A stretch of DNA of 64,000 nucleotides, taken from positions 1 through 64,000 of the forward strand of contig MU626351.1 in NCBI GenBank assembly GCA_025603075.1. The letters run 5' to 3'. The position numbers and the translations under genes are program-made. The stretch is from Neoconidiobolus thromboides FSU 785 (lineage: Eukaryota; Fungi; Entomophthoromycota). Below the pieces are notes generated by a model that was given only the letters and a program-made list of their open reading frames with translations, was not told the DNA's origin and searched no databases. Positions 1 through 50,114 of this stretch are shown piece after piece (position 1 is the stretch's first letter; each line of letters opens with the position of its first letter).

Positions 1-87
1 GAAGATAATATTCTTTTGGGTGGAACTAGAAATTCTCATAACAAATCAAAATAATTAACCATGGGACTGACGAAGCGATATTTCACA
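1..87. mobile_element. End of 464-bp solo-LTR-like element (copy A, truncated by window edge)
   Basis: Matches 29734-29883 except for a 64-bp internal deletion; ends in GATATTTCACA at 87; a MITE begins 10 bp later. Confidence 0.75.
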
Positions 88-96
88 ACATCATAT

Positions 97-194
97 GGGG
101 ATGTGTTTTTTTGTTTAAGAATTTTACTATGATCTTTCCACTTAAATAGCGCTTAAAAAATGGAAAAATAATGAAATTAAAAAAAAACAGTCCC
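97..194 (+). mobile_element. ~98-bp MITE family copy
   Basis: GGGGATGTG...CAGTCCC with core TTAAATAGCGCTTAAAAAATGGAAAAA; ATAT on both sides (93-96, 195-198). Confidence 0.9.
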
Positions 195-468: not shown

Positions 469-2340
469 ATGTCACTAAAGTTTGATCAACTGCCAGGTAT
501 TCTCCTAAAAGGGGTATTTAAGCTACTAAGCCCGAATGAACTATTCAATTATAGTTTTTTAAAATAAATGTTTATTTGAAATTGTCAATGATACTATCAA
601 GTATAATTTAGTACATAGAGTTTATTTTAAAGGGGGATATCGTGGGTATAAAAGAAACTTCAGTAGAAAAAATGGGTTATTGGTGGAGCATATGGATATA
701 ACATCTGATACCCTTAATTACTTGAACTATTGTCGAAGTGTGATATCAATAGGCTATAACGAAGAAAACGATATAGCTAACAAGGATAGTAGCGAAGTAA
801 AGATCGAGCTACCAGAACTAAAGGAGTTAACCATAAATGACTATAACCTAGCGCGGTTATCGAATTGCCTCAATAATATACAATTATGGAATATATTTAA
901 GTTATTTAAATTAAATTGAAGAGCCATAGTTTCTAGCTCTGAGATAGTAATTAAAGAACTAATCAAAAGCTTCAGCCCAAGTAAATTAAAGTCACTTACA
1001 ATACATCCCAATGATGCTTTAATCCTTGATGCATCGGATATACTTAAAGCAGAACTTAGTGTATTAGAATTAATAAAATTGAAAACTTCTGGTAAAGTTG
1101 TTGATCTTTCTTTATTTGATCCTAATATAAATTTTGTACCTAATTTAAAATTAGAGATCAAAGGCCAATTTCAAGATTTCAATATTAGCTGTCTTGGAGA
1201 TTTATGAAACCTAAATACTGTAAAATTAATTGATTATAGTAGTGAATTTTTTGATTTGTGTGATAACAGCAATAGCTTGAAGATGATAGAAGGCGGTAAT
1301 ATCGTCACTTTAGGCCATTTCGATTTTAAATACCAATTTAACCACAATTTATGAAGTTATCAAGCTTAAATGAAATACATGTTAAATAAATATTAGTAAA
1401 ACTATTAAAATCAATTTTTTTGATATCAAACGCTCAGAGAATTCAACTCAATTATTTTGATAAAACTACAAGGTTGTTATTCCTAATCCTAAAAATATTT
1501 TTATAAAATATGAGTATACAAAATAGATATTTTGTGGATTTATTTAGAGATTTTCGTTATTTTTCATTCTCATTTCTGAATCTTGAAGTAACTAAAATTG
1601 AAAATTTCAAGCTTATAGATGTCAACGATTAAGTCAATGATGCCTTTACACCTTCTTCCTCGACACATCAAATATTAACACCAATAGAAAATACTGTAAA
1701 TCCATTATTGAGTGGCTTAGCTCCCCTTGAGATTTGTTTTAATTCTCTCGACATTCTCACAAAAATTTGATATTTTAGGTTCCAAGTTGACAATTCCACT
1801 AATGACTATTGCTCCTGTTAAGGATAGAAAGCTTCATAATGAAGTTAAAAAAACACAACGATATACTGGATACATCTTAAGTACATTAAGTATCGCCTTT
1901 ATAACTATTACTATTAATAAAATGGGTTATAATAGTTCTTACTATGTGAGGATACGGTAATAACTTATTTTAATGTACTTATACAGAAATTTAAACAATA
2001 AATAGCTACGCTATTTATGAAAAAATGACACAAATAGAACTATAATAATGAATATGATAATTCTATAGATAAAAGTCAAATTGACCAAATTTCAATTAAA
2101 AATCTGGCTTTCAATATTATTTGATATGCTCAGTACTTTTAGTTAATAAATTTATGAAAATGAAAAACTCCGATTGGATTAAGGTAGGCTTACTTATTTT
2201 TTAAAGATTGATAGTTATCACTTATCTAGTGTTTAAGGTATTGACCATGAAGTTAAATTAATAAATTTTGGATTAAATGTATGAGCTCAACAATACCAAC
2301 TTTACATCAGCTCATATGAATGACCTCAATGAGTATAATA
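469..2340 (+). pseudogene. F-box/LRR(RNI-like) protein pseudogene
   Basis: ATG 469 gives MSLKFDQLPGILLKGVFKLLSPNELFNYSFL (F-box-like). A frameshift near 560 is followed by ...NGLLVEHMDI...YCRSVISIG...FSPSKLKSLTIH..., with in-frame TGA at 917, 1205 and 1352; FLNLEVTKIE near 1580. Same motifs as 53646-54964. The 3' limit is approximate. Confidence 0.7.
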
Positions 2341-2567
2341 TATAGTACACATTTTGTTACATGTCATTTTTGTACTTTATTTATATCAAAACTCCAAAGC
2401 TGGTAAACTAATGACATCATTTGGATGACGAAAGGAAAGAGATAAGGGATAGGCTATTTTTTTCAAATGAAAGGGATCAAAGCCCTTAACAAAAAATAAA
2501 CAGGAGTTTAAAATCTCATTTTTCATTTAAGTTAACAAAAAATCAATAAAATAAAAAACAAAAAACA

Positions 2568-4792
2568 ATGGATAAAGTAAAAAAAACGAGCAAAGGCAAG
2601 CAAAAGGAGAAACAAATTCAGAAAGAAGAGGAGGAAGCACCCAGCTCTAGCGGTATCAAACCCAGTTTATCAAAGCGTAAGAGTTCCTTCAATGAGCTTC
2701 TGACTGGTCAATTAATTAAAGAAGAGCAGACCGAAGATGGTCGATTCAGACGTGTGACACGACGAAGAGTATTCTTCATCTTTGGTTCACTATTGGGTTT
2801 TGTCCTAGCTTACTTTTTAGTTTCTACAAAAAAAGAAAGCATTCAAAACTTTTATGGAAACGATTGGTCGAGTTATTTTAACTTTGAGTTTGATTTAGCG
2901 GACGGAGATTGGAAGTCATTATTACCTGAAAACAGCATGTTGGAGGAGCTATTTGGTAATTTCAGTAATAGTGTGACACAGAGATCACCAGTGGCAAAGA
3001 TTGAGGACTCACCAGGTAGGAAATTAAAGGATATGGGTGCAAAGCCTAAACATCCAGTAGTCATTATTCCAGGGATTATTACCTCAGTAAGTTGATTTAT
3101 GAGTTTTTATTATTATTTGTTATTAAGTGTGTTTTAGGGTTTAGAGTCCTGGGGCTTAGATAACTGCTCAAAAAAGTACTTTCGTCAAAGAATATGGGGT
3201 ACAATGAATATGTTTAAAACAGTATTGACTGATAAGCAATGCTGGGTCGATAGTTTAAAATTGGACCCAGTTACTGGATTGGATAATGGAGATTATAAGT
3301 TAAGAGCAGCACAGGGTAAATTGAATAGTATAAGCTTTTAATTGAAACGATTTATTCTTTTTTATTTGAAATAGGTTTAGATGCTGCTGACTATTTTGTT
3401 ACGGGCTATTGGGTATGGGCTAAGCTAATAGAAAACTTTGCAATTCTTGGGTATGATAACAATAATATGCATCTGGCTGCTTATGATTGGAGATTGAGTT
3501 ATGCTAATTTAGAAAAGAGAGATAGTTTCTTTAGTAAATTGAAAAATACCATTGAACGAGCAAAGATTGGTTCTGGTGAAAAATTAGTAGTACTGTCGCA
3601 TTCCATGGGTAAACCGAAACTTATAATAATTTAACAAAGAATTAATTAAACGTTTTTTAGGTGGTTCTGTATGGTACTATTTTTTAAAATGGGTTGAAAG
3701 TGATAATGGCGGCAAAGGAGGTAAAAATTGGGTAGAAGATCACATCCACGCTTCTGTGAATATAGCTGGCTCCTTGTTGGGCGCCTTGAAAACAATCCCT
3801 TCTTTACTTAGTGGCGAACAAAGAGAAACAGTGCAACCAATGGCACAATATATTTTAGAACGCTATTTTTCGAGACAAGAAAGAGCTGAGTTATTCCGTA
3901 GTTGGGGTGGCCTTTGGTCTTTGATCCCAAAGGGCGGGGAGCATATTTGGGGTAATCATGAAAAGGCAGCAGACGATATTGAGAATCATGTTTCTCATGG
4001 TAACTTTTTATTGTTTCCTACCCAATCCACGTTGGGTCACAACTTTACAGTGGATGAAGCAATTCAGTTATTAAAAGTGGCTGGTGGAGAACAGTTTACA
4101 AAGAATTTAGAAGAATCATATAGCTTTGGAGCTGCTTTAAATGAAGACCAAATAAGAAACGATGATCCGGCTGCTTGGTCTAATCCATTAGAAACTAACT
4201 TACCAAACGCTCCTAGTATGAAGTATTATTGCTTATATGGATATGGGTTGCCTACAGAAAGGTCGTACCATTATGATGAAACACCAGCATTGGAGGAATT
4301 GGATGAGAGTAGGACTTTGAAGTATATTATTGATAATAAGGTTAACGATTTGGATTCAAAATCGGAGTCTGGAGTACGCAGTGGGTTAGGGTAATATAAC
4401 ATAATACATCAATAGTATAAAAGGCTTAACCCGATACCTTTATTTAGAGATGGTTCTGTACAATTGCTATCTTTAGGTTATATGTGCGTTAAAGGATGGA
4501 AAAAGAAGTTGTATAATCCAAGTGGGTTAAAAGTGATAACTAGAGAATTTAAGCACAAACCAGTAGCTATCTATGAGGATATTCGCGGCGGTCCAGAAAC
4601 TGGTGAACATGTTGATATCTTGGGGAATTATGGCCTTACTGTAAGAACCTCATTTTATTATAAAACAGTAAATTTGTTAATTTTTTTATCTAGATGGATA
4701 TCATGCAAATTGCAACTGGCTTTGATACCCAAAATATCACGGATCGTATTGAATCAGATATATTAAGCGTGGCTGATAAAGTACCGCTCTAG
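2568..4792 (+). CDS. LRO1: Phospholipid:diacylglycerol acyltransferase (PDAT, LCAT family), multi-exon
   Basis: N-terminal TM helix, HPVVIIPGIITS|GLESW across intron 3087-3137, VLSHSMG nucleophile motif, NLPNAPSMKYYCLYG, GDGSVQLLSLGYMC, EHVDILG; stop TAG 4790-4792. Confidence 0.95.
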
Positions 4793-4868
4793 ATGTAAAG
4801 AGATAAACTTATCAAATAAAATTATATTAGTTATATTATTATGTATTCCATTTTATTCATTTCTAATT

Positions 4869-6157
4869 TTAAAAATTGAAAGGTATAAAAGGGTAAAGAC
4901 TAAACTTGAGCTTAAATATACCCATTAGAAATAGGATGGAGCCTACTAAGATAACTAAAAAGGCAATGGTCAACAAAGATTGTAACCATTGGTTGCTGAT
5001 TGTAGGAGTGGTACGGCCAATGTAGATTACTGCAAATGTAGCTATGCCATCTAATAACAATAGTAATAAGTTATAATTAACAAAAAAAAGAAAACAAAAA
5101 AAAAGTACATATGAAAGCAATGACATGGCTTTCTAACCCATATTGCTCTTGGAAGCCAGAAGCATACCACTGTATAGCTCCATTCCTTGCCATTCTTGAA
5201 TAGGCGGGCTGACGTATACTGTTCCACATCTGGCCAGAGGACATAGAGAGAATGAATACCTGGATATTAAATTAGAGGTTCAGTTTTGATTACAAGTCTA
5301 AAAGTTACTAAAGTGATAGCTGACCATAACCTTTTACTAGTTAAAAGTTGTTTTACATTGGCAGCAAACAGATAGGCCAAAGTGGCCAAACTAGCTATGA
5401 TACCTCCTTTTAAAGCTAAAGATTGGTAATCTATGGGTTTGCTGTAGAATACCTAGATTATTTTATTTATATATATTCCTATCTAATTTTGATTATAGTT
5501 TACTTTAAAAGTCAAATATTTATTAAGGAATTCGATCATTTCTTCAATGGAAGATTCACTATAAAACATTTTAAATTTTTGCTTACTAAAAAACTAATGT
5601 ATTACCTATGAGACTCATTATAGATTTGATATTTTGGGTCTGAAGTTTTAGCTTCATTTGGGGTATACAAGAAAAGATTAGGTGCTCCAGTTAATCCGTA
5701 CTAATAAATAATCTAAAAATTTATAAAATGCAAACCAAATTTTGAATACCTTAACAAAAACGGATGTGGCATCCTCATAATCTAAAGAAGCAATGAACAG
5801 TTTATCCTTATTTTCATTCTTTTCCAAATCTTTAGCAATAAGCTTTAAGTTGTTATCAAGGTGGCTAAAGTAAAGGAACCTCATTAGACATCGCCCACAG
5901 AAATGATTTTAATCAAACACTTACCGACAAGGGGTACAATCAAACCTCTCACCGAGAACTGTTAAAGCTACTAGCATAGAAAAATCTCTTTTGGCATTAA
6001 TATATTTATTAAACGATTTTGGGTCTTTGAAATAAATGATTCCATCTTTTTTAGTCTCTTGTTGAATGTCTTTCAATATATCTATTTCTGCGTTGATACC
6101 TACTATCAGAAAAAGACAGAAAAGTAGTTGAAGAACACGTATTATGGTCACTTGCAT
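4869..6157 (-). CDS. OST3: Oligosaccharyltransferase OST3/OST6-family subunit, multi-exon
   Basis: Signal peptide, thioredoxin-like CTPC motif, SGQMWNSIRQPAY and ASGFQEQYGLES near 5130-5250, C-terminal TM helices ending KFSLYPFIPFNF. OST3 versus OST6 is not resolved. Confidence 0.9.
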
Positions 6158-6559
6158 TCTTTTGGTTGACTAAAAGTTAAAATTTGGAGTAAATTGTTAG
6201 TGTTTTTACATGAGTTGGTGACTTTGGTCACTGTGATTGGTGGACAAAAATTGCTAAATTAGGTAATAAAATTGGTCACTCGATTGGGATAGCTTTGTTA
6301 GGTTATTAATTTTCATATCATGAACTGTAGATAATAAAAATAGATGATTAATTAATTTCAAAAATATAGCATTTATTTACGACTTCAAACGCAATAACTT
6401 ATATAACAAATAATTGCGGTTCAATATAAGCTATAAATATAAACAATATAGACTATTTTTTAAAGGATTGAACTAAAAGCCACACCTAAGCAAAAAACAG
6501 TAAATCAGTATCACCTTAAAGTTTTCGAAAAAACAACTCTTTATTAAATAAACCCCCGA

Positions 6560-9500
6560 TCATCCTGTATAAGTAAAACAAGCAAACTGGATCCTAGTAG
6601 TATATCTCGCCTTAGCCACCAATGTTTCCAACTCCTTCAACTCACTCGGATCCATATTCTGGAATGGTGGTTCCCCTTTTGAGTATTGTCCACTATGGAT
6701 AGCACTATAAATTATCTTAAATAAATCTGACGTCTTACTCGTTGAAAAGGGCTGCAATATTAATTCGATGAATTCAACTTCTAAAGTAGCCTAGGAGGTA
6801 AAATTAAGCTGTTGTTTTTGATCTAAAATAAAATAATGGTTACCTGCAGAGCGCCTTCCTTAGAGAGTCTTTCAATATTACGAAAGCATATTAAAAGCTC
6901 TTGTGCAATTAGTTCTAATAATTTCGCTAAAATACGCTTCATTAATACATCACTTACTTTGGAAGATTCGGCATGTACAACCACTAAGGACATTAGGATT
7001 TCATAGATAAAGGGGCGGATATCTATACTTGTTAGATAAAATATTACCAAATCAAAAAATATAAGATTACTCGTTGGCTTTTCCTTAGTTTCCCAGTTGA
7101 AGTCACTGAACAAAATACCTTGTTGTAAAGTTTCTCTTATATTGGCTATCTGTTTAAGTATATAAGCATCGAATAATTTCTCCTCCAAAATCTTTATTGC
7201 ACTTTTAATTTGCTAAACAACATAAATCCAATTTCTTTGCAAATTTTTGATTAATGGACTTACAATTAAATTCAACTTCTTGTTAAGTCCAACTGCAGAT
7301 TCAAACTCAGTAATGATTTTTTGGCTGTGTTCTTTGGTGATCGAGACATTGTTGAGTGCTAACACTAGTTTATCAAGTTTCTGTATCATATTTAATTTAA
7401 CTGTTATTATTTAAAAAACTATATATTACGTCTGGGAGATCATCTTTGGTTTCGGTTTTTCTTTGAAAGAAGGCCATGAAGTTAAGACCATCCAAAAAGG
7501 ACAAGGTTGAATCAATCAAACATGGTATCCCGGATTCTAAAATTACTGGATCATCCTAATGAAGTTAGTATTATAAAATTTAAAACTAAAATAGAATAGT
7601 AATAAATACTTCAGCCATTAAATTTGGCAATACCAATTTAGACGCTTTTATAATCAATTTCAAAATAGTAATTGATCGAAGTTGATAATCATAAAACATT
7701 TGACAAGATTTTGACTTACGTGCTTTGGATTCAATATCGATAAGGAACACACATTTGGAATCTAGAAGAAAAATAAATCTATCTAAATTGGTAAAAAAAT
7801 CTCTACCTTGTATCCAACTATCACAAAAGAATGCCGAAAAATCCACTCTTGTTCTAGAGAATAATTGCAAAATGAGTTTATTGATATGCTTTGGTGCGTT
7901 GATATGCGCAATTTCTACAAAAGCTACTGATAGCTCTTGGATAATCATAGAGGCATAATGGCCTACTAGTAAACAATTTGAGTCATCTGGCAAAGGTAAT
8001 AAGGTCTTTTCGTTGATTGCTGTGATAATGCCAAAATGTGGAGATCTATCTGATTTCTGTGGCAAGGCTACAGGATCTGGGTAAAACACTTTGGAGATTG
8101 TAATCATTAATAGAGCTACGATCTCTTCTGTCATCTGTAACCAAAAGGCCTCATATTTATTGTCTGGGAATAGTTTCTAGAAATTGTTAGACTTCTATAG
8201 TTTATACAAACTGAAACAATTACTTTATAAAGTTCATCTTTTTTAAACTGATTTAAGAACTTGTAAAGTTCTGGAATAGTCTTTCCAATCAATTCACTTA
8301 GTATTTTAATAAAAGCGTGCGTTTGCTTCCATATAAAAGCATTTGGCAGTTTATCTTTATTATAAATATTAATAATCTTTATGAACATTTACTTAATTTA
8401 CCAATAGTTGTTTGAAAAAAGTCAGTGCTTTGAATTTTCAATAGCGCTTGAATTTCTTGGGCTCTCCTTAACAATATAATTTCTTCCTGTTTATGATGCT
8501 CTAAATCATATTTTCCGAACGCATTACCAACTGAGTTGTTTAAGGTTGTTTGGGCTTAAATAGAATTTAAAAACAACACAAATTAAAAACAAATTAAATT
8601 ACCAATCAATGTGTCAATATGCTCCGTAAACGACCTATCTACAAATTCAATGACCCATTTATGTTGGTTCTTTAAATAAAAGATAAGTGGGTCTTTGGTA
8701 CAATCAAGCTGAAGTAAATAACTGAAAACAAATGATTAGCAGCCATCTATAGTATTGTCATATTATGTTACTTTATATATTTAGCCTGAAGATCCATATC
8801 AATCCAAGGGTTATCCAGTTTACTAAAGATACTTTCTTGAACCTTAAGTATACTATCCTGAACAGGTATCCATACCTTTTCAAATAATCGGTGCAAGGGG
8901 CCACCAGCAGAAGCACCTGTGGACGCTGACTTCATCAAATGCTTGCCCTTTTTGTAATCGTGGACGGCTAAATCATAGTTCGACTATTTGATGCAATTGA
9001 TAAGATAGAGTTTTAAAAATAGTAGTTAAAGATCAACTAATTAATAACAACTTACTGTTTTAATATAATCCAACATACTGGTAGGCAAATTAAAAAAAAA
9101 CTTATATCTTTCTACCACATTTAAAGTAGATCTTATCTTTTCAGTACGGTTTGTCCGCTCAATAATTGGTCCAAATACAATCTGTGCTTGTTCAAATGCA
9201 TCTAATAAAAACCATTAATAAAGATCAATGATGTCAACTAAATCTCACCATTTAGAGCATTCTCATAGCTTTCTGTTCCATATCCTGTAGATTCCTTCAC
9301 ATTATTACTCAACAATTCTTGGTACAAATCTAAAACCCAAAATTATTACTATTAGTTCCTTATTCTTACCAGATAAAAATGTTATTGATCCTTTAAAAAC
9401 TTTACCATCCACCGTATTCTTAGCACTTACAAAAGCGTCAAAATTATTTTTTACTAATACCCTCAATGATTTTTCTCTTTCACTCATTTCTCCTTGTAAA

Positions 9501-27612: not shown

Positions 27613-27712
27613 TTGTTTTTTTGTTTAACAATTTTATTAACAATTTTATTAACAGTTTTCCACTCAAATAGCACTTAAGAAATAGAAGTGATGAAGCTGA
27701 AAAAAACACCCC
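27613..27712 (+). mobile_element. MITE copy lacking its 5' G-run, abutting solo-LTR copy B
   Basis: Short internal tandem duplication of the AATTTTATTAAC motif; ends AAAAAACACCCC directly before TGTGAAAT. Confidence 0.8.
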
Positions 27713-28176
27713 TGTGAAATATCACTCTGTCAGCCCCATGGTTAATTATAGCATAATAATTTCCTAAGCTGTTGTGTTCTCGATTATACAGACAATTAGT
27801 CCCATGTTCTTATTTTGATTTGCTATGAGAATTTCTATCTTCGTCCCAAAGAATATTATCCTCTCGTTTTGATATTTATACTTATCGGAGTATAAAAGAG
27901 ATTCTAAAACATAATAGCTCTAGGCTTTTTAACTGAATTATTCCCTGATATCTTATACATTTAATAAAGACACTAAGTTTTCTTAATAATATTTTATGTA
28001 GATTTTACATTAGTATTGTCTATTCTATTTGTTTTACATAGTCTGTAGCCTATTACGTGCTATTCTTCGTAATCCAAGTCTATTTTAGTCACATAAACTA
28101 AGACTTTTCGACTTATAGTGTAATCAATCAGGTAATAGCTGTTTTTGACTCCAAATACTGAGTACCAGATTTCACA
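27713..28176. mobile_element. 464-bp solo-LTR-like element (copy B, inverted relative to copies A and C)
   Basis: Starts TGTGAAAT and ends ATTTCACA; reverse complement of 29420-29883 over its whole length (roughly 85-90% identical by eye). Flanks ACCCC/ACTCT are not a clean TSD. Confidence 0.8.
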
Positions 28177-28786
28177 ACTCTGTGTTGATACTCAAAAAAA
28201 CACATTTAATGAAACTATTAAAAAATTAAATAATAAAAGTTGTGTAATAATTTTAGATTTTAAACAAAATATGGAAATAGGAACAAGACCAGATTCAATA
28301 AATCTAGATCATTATAATAAACAAGCTATATCAGTATTAGGTTTTGGTGCTTTATACTTAAAAGATGATAAAATAATAGGCAGAGTTTATTTTGATTATT
28401 TATCTGAAATATTGAATCATGATTCAGCATATGCAGGAGATTATTTAATTGATTTAATCTCTATAGAGCTTTTATTTAAAAATTTTGTAAGAATTAATAT
28501 ATGGACAGGTACGGAAAATCATTTTAAATTTCAAGAGTTTCTACATTACACATTTGAAGAAATTCATAAAATAAATAGTAGTTTGAATGTCGATTTTAAT
28601 TTTTTTGCTAAGCATCATGGAAAAGGTATAATTGATAGACATTTTGGAAATCTTTTACAATGAAAAAGTAGTTTTAAAACATTAAGAAAAATGGAAGATA
28701 TTACTTAATTAATTTTAAAATTTGAGGTTTTTGTTTGTGAGCATAATATGATCAATAACTCAACTGTTAATAATGGAAAAACAGAT
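28177..28786 (+). pseudogene. DDE transposase fragment with Sola-like motifs
   Basis: VIILDFKQN ... SEILNHD ... INIWTGTENHFK ... FNFFAKHHGKGIIDRHFG. TGA at 28661-28663, with the frame continuing (KSSFKTLRKMEDIT) up to a MITE. The 5' end is cut by copy B. Confidence 0.75.
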
Positions 28787-29272: not shown

Positions 29273-29419
29273 AATATTTAATAATTTATATTAAAACTAA
29301 TTAAACTGCCATTCCTACTATTTTGATATTATTTAAAAGTAAAAATATCATTATCAAGGATACAAATAAAAATATATATATATTTTTAAATAAGTTTCAA
29401 TATCTGGTTTCAATATGGG

Positions 29420-29883
29420 TGTGAAATCTGGTACTCAGGGTTTGGAGTCAAGAACAGCTATTGCTGGGTTGACTACACTATAAGTCGAAAGGTCTTAGTT
29501 TATGTGACTAAGATAGACTTGGATTATGAGGAATAGCACGTAATAGGTTACAAGCTATATAAGACAAATAGAATAGACAATACTAATGTAAAATCTATGT
29601 AAAATACTATTAAGAAAACTTAGTGGCTTTATTAAATGTTCGAGATATCAGGGAATAATTCAGTTAAAAAGCCTCGAACTATTATACTCTGTAAACTCTT
29701 TTATACTCTGAAAAATATAAATATCAAAATGAGAAGATAGTATTCTTTTGGATGGAGCTAGAAATTCTCATAACAAATCAAAATAAGAACATGGGATTGA
29801 TTTCCTCTGAGCTCGAGAACACAACAGCTTAGGCGATTGTTATGTTATAATTAACCATGGGACTGACATAGCGATATTTCACA
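29420..29883. mobile_element. 464-bp solo-LTR-like element (copy C) with 5-bp TSD
   Basis: TGTGAAAT...ATTTCACA flanked by ATGGG (29415-29419) and ATGGG (29884-29888). Confidence 0.85.
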
Positions 29884-29885
29884 AT

Positions 29886-29983
29886 GGGGATGTATTTTTT
29901 TGTTTAAGAATTTTACTAACAATCTTTCTGCTCAAATAGCGCTTAAAAAGTGGAAAAGTAATGAAATCAAAAAAAACATCCCC
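29886..29983 (+). mobile_element. ~98-bp MITE family copy whose left end was hit by copy C
   Basis: GGGGATG...CATCCCC followed by ATAT; its left ATAT is found at 29413-29416, on the far side of the 464-bp insert. Confidence 0.92.
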
Positions 29984-30068
29984 ATATATTAATAGCTTAA
30001 TTTTACTATCATTGTTTATATCACGTTTAAAGACAACTAGCTATTAATAATGTTTAAATATTAAATAT

Positions 30069-49912: not shown

Positions 49913-50011
49913 AGGGATGTATTTTTGTATTTAAAAGTTTTACTAACAGTCTTTCCACTCAAATAGCGCCTAAAAAATGGAAAAAGTAATGAAATCAAAA
50001 AAAACATCACC
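49913..50011 (+). mobile_element. ~98-bp MITE family copy (first of tandem pair)
   Basis: AGGGATG...CATCACC flanked by ATAT/ATAT. Confidence 0.92.
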
Positions 50012-50015
50012 ATAT

Positions 50016-50114
50016 GGGGATGTGTTTTTGTATTTAAGAATTTTACTAACAATTTTTTTATTCGAATAGCGCTTAAAAGATGGAAAAAATAATGAAGCCA
50101 AAAAAAACATCCCC
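50016..50114 (+). mobile_element. ~98-bp MITE family copy (second of tandem pair)
   Basis: GGGGATG...CATCCCC flanked by ATAT/ATAT; shares the middle ATAT with the first copy. Confidence 0.93.

Follow-up and report, generated by a model that had tools for sequence, protein, structure and literature searches.

A partial insertion hot spot of a solo-LTR family at MITE ends in the fungus Neoconidiobolus thromboides

Introduction

Several LTR retrotransposons avoid killing their host by targeted integration, a behaviour also studied as a model of how retroviral vectors might be steered. Tf1 of Schizosaccharomyces pombe is guided by the DNA-binding protein Sap1, while in S. cerevisiae TFIIIB directs Ty3 to Pol III start sites. 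To our knowledge, the well-studied targeted LTR elements all aim at features of the host, namely Pol III genes, heterochromatin or Sap1-bound promoters. Outside the LTR elements, the non-LTR retrotransposon Tx1L inserts into the DNA transposon Tx1D of Xenopus, and in bacteria IS1397 and members of the IS110/IS1111 group target the palindromic REP/BIME units at a defined position and orientation. Plant LTR retrotransposons nest non-randomly and favour certain regions of other elements, with weak structural or nucleosome correlates (Jedlicka et al. 2019, PMC6911290).

The solo-LTR family of N. thromboides described here has an insertion hot spot at the ends of a short, abundant MITE. With Tf1 and Ty3 it has in common that the element is an LTR element of the Ty3/gypsy type, that insertion is precise to a few nucleotides and subject to orientation effects, and that the target is a “safe” non-coding sequence; the targets of Tf1 and Ty3 are bound by protein. 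It differs from both in that the target is a MITE terminus together with its duplication, that about 5–14 % of the copies use it, that the element is seemingly extinct and that a tethering factor is only postulated. A peak at a fixed distance, as in the tethered elements Ty3, Tf1 and Ty5, is found, but the use of the target by a majority of copies is not. The likeness to Tx1L and other sequence-specific non-LTR elements lies in a preferred target in or at another family of transposable elements; however, elements of the Tx1L type rely on a target-specific endonuclease and target-primed reverse transcription and reach nearly full specificity, whereas we are dealing with an integrase-type LTR element and a partial preference. 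Homing on a short and abundant MITE-like repeat is also what the REP/BIME-targeting insertion sequences do, but their DNA transposases are prokaryotic and work by another chemistry, and there is no evolutionary relationship. Compared with the regional preferences in plant LTR nesting (PMC6911290), the present case is a single-nucleotide hot spot at the end of a DNA transposon, with an orientation bias. What is new in the MITE-end hot spot is the class of target; the behaviour, targeted integration, is known.

The window and its nested copies

The window, that is the whole stretch of DNA analysed, comprises the first 64 kb of one contig (C94) in an assembly of 24.6 Mb and 799 contigs. It has a G+C content of about 28 % and long open frames are scarce, which marks it as eukaryotic. 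A first-pass annotation, made from the letters of the window, had described a 464-bp element with TG..CA ends in three copies, here A, B and C, each close to a MITE end, and had estimated that MITEs cover some 2 kb of the 64 kb. Both descriptions hold: the distance to the MITE is 0–9 bp in all three cases, and about 20 MITE copies occupy roughly 2 kb (Table 1). The same is true of the layout around copies A and B. The left flank of copy A lies outside the window, and copy B, which is wedged between a MITE-like end and a truncated copy of another repeat (repeat X), has no target-site duplication.

Table 1. Features of the window and the reverse-transcriptase-bearing relative; positions refer to the window unless a contig is given.
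Feature	Position	Strand	Remarks
LTR copy A	1..87	-	Incomplete, cut off by the contig start; turns the same LTR end towards its MITE as copy C does
MITE beside copy A	97..194	+	Separated from copy A by 9 bp; 4-bp duplication ATAT on either side, 93-96 and 195-198
MITE-like fragment	27616..27712	+	Its ...ACACCCC end (27712) touches copy B directly
Solo LTR copy B	27713..28176	+	Ends at 28176, not 28178; reversed relative to copy C and 86 % identical to it; deep branch of the tree
Truncated repeat X	28179..28786	+	Decayed, DDE-transposase-like; second place of recurrent LTR copies
Left ATGGG of copy C	29415..29419	.	5-bp target-site duplication
Solo LTR copy C	29420..29883	-	464 bp, TGTGAAAT..ATTTCACA; probable strand, from the relatives that flank gag-pol
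Right ATGGG of copy C	29884..29888	.	AT from the MITE's own ATAT duplication, GGG from the MITE terminal repeat
Target MITE of copy C	29886..29983	+	98 bp, GGGGATGT..ACATCCCC; ATAT duplication at 29413-29416 and 29984-29987
LTR-flanked gag-pol element (L035)	C168:34500-43717, element 2178-8761		Only reverse-transcriptase-bearing LTR-flanked element; the assembly's only intact Ty3/gypsy gag-pol frame

Copy C is the most telling of the three. Its ATGGG duplication had been read as running across the MITE end, with one ATAT of the MITE's own duplication left stranded on the far side of the LTR, and this reading is confirmed by rebuilding the empty site: removal of the LTR and of one ATGGG restores AATATGGGGATGT. 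Since the site is restored intact, the MITE must have been in place before the LTR arrived.

The MITE is a short, non-coding element of about 98 bp and high copy number that extends from GGGGATGT to ACATCCCC, with terminal repeats GGGGATGTnTTTTT. It is flanked by a 4-bp duplication, mostly ATAT, also AGTT, ATTA or AAAT. A pattern for its core has 5,696 matches in the genome (21 for the control pattern), and exact ATATGGGGATGT ends occur 2,450 times (3 for the control). MITEs make up roughly 2–3 % of the genome but 11.6 % of the DNA that flanks the LTRs. The LTRs thus sit in MITE-rich regions, so that part of the association between the two is regional. As a separate observation, MITEs are also found head to tail with one common ATAT (…CCCCATATGGGG…), at 49914-50114 of the window, at locus L022 and at C62:57177; the MITE family tends to insert at MITE ends too, as expected from its preference for ATAT targets.

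Identity of the 464-bp element

The 20-bp terminus of the LTR has 394 matches in the genome and none for the control pattern. The copy census rests on 64 full copies, obtained from 70 fetched loci, and on genome-wide pattern searches. Nearly all of the 64 begin and end with TGTGAAAT...ATTTCACA, with TG..CA ends and 8-bp terminal inverted repeats, and the best 40 full copies are 95–98 % identical to copy C. The flanking duplication (n=64) is 4 bp long in 33 copies, 5 bp in 8 and 3 bp in 2, and is absent in 21; six copies of the last two classes are one mismatch short of a 4–5 bp duplication. A 5-bp duplication, which had been put forward as typical, is therefore right for copy C but is not the family norm, which is 4 bp.

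Reverse-transcriptase (RVT_1) matches are confined to two loci of the genome, C168 and C40, the latter being a fragment without a nearby LTR. The C168 locus (L035) carries an open frame of 1486 aa with matches to gag, RVT_1, RT_RNaseH and the integrase zinc finger Integrase_H2C2. About 600 residues precede the gag match in this frame, and it also has a weak dUTPase match. Two relatives of the 464-bp unit, 75–81 % identical to it, bracket the frame and both have its orientation. It is these directly oriented relatives around gag-pol that make the 464-bp units solo LTRs of a Ty3/gypsy-type lineage, and the identity proposed in the first-pass annotation is thereby upheld, together with the TG..CA ends and the 4–5 bp duplications of 41 of the 64 copies. 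If the relatives are taken as the guide, the LTR at copy C probably reads, in its true orientation, along the minus strand of the window.

The first-pass annotation had further asked whether gag-pol lies between two direct LTRs, with a primer-binding site and a polypurine tract. Such an arrangement exists in the relative at C168; none was found with the 464-bp LTR itself. At C168 the 5' LTR is followed by TT and then by TGGCGCTCATAAC, a candidate primer-binding site with its TGG two bases past the LTR, and the 3' LTR is preceded by nothing but a short purine-rich stretch, ATAGGGTGTGAAA. The two LTRs are mutually about 75 % alike, the element lacks a flanking duplication, and past the zinc finger the integrase core is interrupted by stops. 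By eye, the C-terminal region ends in a GPY/F-like stretch and has no chromodomain-like tail. The integrase core domain rve (PF00665) gives zero matches across the whole assembly, which, with the stops in the C168 integrase, fits an extinct family rather than an active one.

Nor do searches with RVT_1 and rve reveal, anywhere in the assembly, a full-length element with a young 464-bp LTR. Internal retroelement sequence is found beside none of the 64 LTR copies, and neither BLASTN nor TBLASTN nor TBLASTX finds the internal part of the C168 element in the 70 LTR loci or the window. In particular, TBLASTX (E<=1e-3) shows no resemblance between the segment 31333-32233 of the window, whose frames all contain stops, and the integrase region of C168. 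The family thus appears to consist of solo LTRs only and to be extinct in this assembly.

Some LTR loci are of interest in their own right. At L018 (C69:1018-4481) two inverted LTR copies have swapped flanking tetranucleotides, GAAG and AAAC, which is the signature that one would expect if two solo LTRs had recombined and inverted the DNA between them. At L027 (C100:1-2056) a solo LTR adjoins a (TTAGGG)n telomere-type repeat at the contig end. Many other contigs start or stop inside the 464-bp LTR, so that the family evidently breaks the assembly.

LTR copies also recur in or near the first ~300 bp of repeat X, in the window as well as in C35, C8, C13 and C180 (L013, L038, L040, L030). Two of these, L013 and L040, have the LTR at the same ..AAAAAT(C/G)CAG site of the repeat. 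Repeat X exists in at least 40 copies at 85–92 % identity; it has no Pfam match, and its nearest Atlas clusters include DUF7869. In two of its copies the homology begins directly after a MITE, and these two MITEs are oppositely oriented.

Enrichment at MITE ends

How far the situation in the window holds for the family was assessed by a local permutation. The empty site was rebuilt for each of the 64 copies, MITEs were annotated with a profile made from the window copies, and each insertion point was set against every position of its own 3-kb flank, which corrects for MITE-rich islands. With the discovery copy left out, 6 of 63 insertions (9.5 %) fall within 3 bp of a MITE end where 0.97 are expected (p=4.6e-4), a 6-fold local enrichment, and 9 of 63 (14 %) fall within 10 bp where 2.9 are expected (p=0.002). 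It is the first sample, made up of the copies most like C, that accounts for the excess: 5 of its 31 copies lie at most 3 bp from a MITE end, as against 1 of 32, a number not above expectation, in the second sample (84–96 % identity).

A genome-wide search for junctions, defined as an LTR end, a gap of 0–30 bases and a MITE start, gives 50 matches against 3 for the control, although some of these junction counts may be inflated if small contigs are redundant copies, redundancy having been judged by distinct flanks. The gap is exactly 2 bp, and then always AT, in 10 of the 39 readable MITE starts outside the window (p=3e-7), which gives the junction ACA/AT/GGGGATGT. It is at most 3 bp in 15 of 39 (p=5e-5), and the background at gaps of 10–30 amounts to some 0.86 per base. 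Insertions are found at either end of the MITE. The two LTR ends are not used alike: in 9 of 10 ACA/AT/GGGG junctions it is the same end, TATTTCACA, that faces the MITE (p=0.02), and in the true orientation this is the U3 end. The corresponding search for the far, flank-side junction yields 13 matches for the expected end and 9 for the other, with controls of 1 and 4. A pattern of TATTTCACAAT plus flank is unspecific (106 matches, 72 in the control) and was kept for a few readable cases only.

Most LTR copies sit elsewhere and have no clear target motif. The 35 insertion sites outside MITEs display a weak composition pattern but nothing like ATATGG, and the hot spot is accordingly not the product of a general motif. 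Duplications of 5 bp make up a high share at the hot spot. Insertions close to it in sequence are seen at L022 and perhaps at L008, where the ATAT..GGG sequence that was hit does not clearly begin a MITE. In addition, an 81-bp remnant with both LTR termini (C327:5271-5388) lies one base off the hot spot, with the flanks ...CACATCCCCA and CCATAT....

Targeting of MITE ends is thus real but partial and concerns about 5–14 % of the copies. An association beyond chance, as first proposed, is borne out, while its “3 of 3” rate overstated the preference. Likewise, the idea of a retroelement that homes on MITE ends stands as a strong hot spot, single-nucleotide in position, biased in orientation and hit in independent events, but not as a rule for the family. 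The first-pass annotation had named two observations that would speak against it. One was that copies genome-wide mostly lack MITE ends; we judge that this objection fails, as the genome-wide enrichment holds even though most copies are elsewhere. The other was that a single insertion had been spread by segmental duplication; this fails as well, since the loci do not have their flanks in common.

Independence and order of the insertions

Both junctions can be seen at five loci, C16 (ATGG), C42 (ATGG) and C57, C94 and C152 (ATGGG). Their outer flanks are all different and each restores ATATGGGG when the LTR is taken out. The junction on the MITE side is fixed and the far junction lies 4 or 5 bases off; the sequence beyond the MITEs is unrelated from locus to locus. 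A tree of 65 LTRs is star-like, and the copies at MITE ends are not clustered on it (10 changes of the label, 10.4 in shuffles). Unique flanks, intact duplications and a star-like tree together mean that the insertions are independent.

The copies at MITE ends have somewhat shorter end branches (median 0.014 versus 0.026, p=0.03); two of them, window copy B and L050_43, branch off deep in the tree. A young subfamily that alone targets MITEs was considered in view of the difference between the two samples (5/31 versus 1/32) and rejected, given these two deep branches and the unclustered label.

Possible mechanisms

With LTR identity, independent events, the MITE-first order, the biases in position and orientation and the use of both MITE ends demonstrated, our reading is that a Ty3/gypsy solo-LTR family of about 400 copies combined loose targeting with a hot spot at the boundary of the 98-bp MITE (at least 5,700 copies), which it would have found through a distorted or protein-occupied terminus. 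We put the probability of this reading at roughly 0.7. The insertions would result from ordinary integrase-mediated integration with a duplication of 4, sometimes 5 bp, target choice being loose for the most part. At the hot spot, strand transfer would take place in the middle of ATAT and, 4–5 nt further on, inside the terminal G-run, AT^ATGG(G); this cut geometry would centre the integration site on the exact end of the transposon. The U3 end of the LTR points towards the MITE in about nine cases out of ten. What attracted the integration complex to the terminal inverted repeat may have been distorted DNA or DNA occupied by a protein, candidates for the occupant being the cognate transposase of the MITE or a host factor, in the manner of Tf1 with Sap1 and Ty3 with TFIIIB. 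The narrower proposal that the transposase or a host reader of the terminal repeat, bound at the MITE end, recruited the integration complex is unlikely as it stands, but such recruitment, if true, would account for a position exact to one nucleotide, for the bias in orientation and for duplications that tend more towards 5 bp at the site.

A protein may not be required at all. The integrase may have had a pure preference for the primary sequence or intrinsic structure of ATATGGGG(ATGT), nearly all such sites being supplied by MITE ends. Almost every one of the 2,450 exact ATATGGGGATGT sites is a MITE end, both ends of the MITE are hit with just the terminal repeat in common, and L022 lies at CCCCATAT/GGG with no MITE-like sequence behind it. 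However, no related motif appears at the other insertion sites, a 9:1 orientation bias is hard to obtain from a symmetric integrase-target preference, and ACA/ATGG junctions are few outside MITEs, where by a composition estimate ATATGG should be commoner. On this balance a bare sequence preference is not probable, yet it deserves to be taken seriously. A different role for the MITE transposase would be to make staggered breaks at which retrotransposon cDNA is captured without an integrase. The hot spot is indeed centred on the exact transposon end, where a transposase cuts, and the duplication length of 4 or 5 bp at one and the same site would suit such capture. Yet one cut would have to fall halfway along the duplication, 2 nt beyond the end of the element, and we know of no DDE transposase with this geometry; moreover, nearby insertions at -4 to +8 match a relaxed integrase preference. 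Capture is made less likely, too, by the LTR ends, which are complete (TG..CA), and by duplications of the same length as at ordinary sites, and we regard it as quite improbable.

The remaining alternatives deny targeting, the independence of the events or the nature of the element. If LTRs and MITEs merely shared gene-poor islands, the window would be a lucky nest; MITE coverage of 11.6 % in LTR flanks against ~2–3 % genome-wide, and a second sample of 32 copies without an excess, are what one would then expect. The local permutation controls for island density and is still significant, and regional co-accumulation can produce neither a gap peak of a single nucleotide nor an orientation bias, so that this explanation is largely refuted and highly unlikely. 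An LTR-MITE composite that formed once and was then copied, by segmental duplication or within a larger mobile unit, would account for the identical ACA/AT/GGGGATGT junction at about 10 loci and for its dominant orientation; MITEs might also have inserted beside older LTRs. But outer flanks and the adjacent MITE copies differ by locus, both MITE orientations occur, and the LTRs at MITE ends are scattered over the star-like tree, two deep branches included. Moreover, the LTR duplication spans the MITE end and removal of the LTR gives back the MITE's ATAT. Single origin and the reverse order of insertion are therefore largely refuted as well, and hardly credible. Finally, the 464-bp unit could be a non-autonomous DNA transposon of the Ginger1 type and not an LTR. 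Ginger1 transposons have TG..CA ends and a 4-bp duplication (PMC6839031). The unit agrees in its ends, its 8-bp terminal inverted repeat and its mostly 4-bp duplication, and no full-length retroelement with the exact 464-bp LTR was found. On the other hand, homologous copies flank gag-pol in direct orientation beside a TGG primer-binding-like site, and no rve match exists genome-wide that could act as a Ginger transposase. The terminal repeats of Ginger1 are, besides, far longer than 8 bp, the length seen in this unit. A Ginger1 origin is thus very improbable, and integration of an LTR element at a distorted or protein-occupied MITE terminus remains our preferred reading.

Concluding remarks

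Two things lessen the weight of the finding: the preference is only partial, and the searches turned up no active copy. A literature search with this species, in which one paper named it together with mobile elements, suggests that the mobile elements of its lineage have been little studied. In practical terms, the hot spot provides a defined 12-bp site that is usable for integration assays. If recruitment by the MITE transposase or a host protein is true, it would amount to a parasite using the machinery of another to reach a harmless landing site. More generally, a DNA-transposon end that serves as a hot spot would offer a concrete example of a transposon that exploits another, found in a fungal lineage that diverged early.
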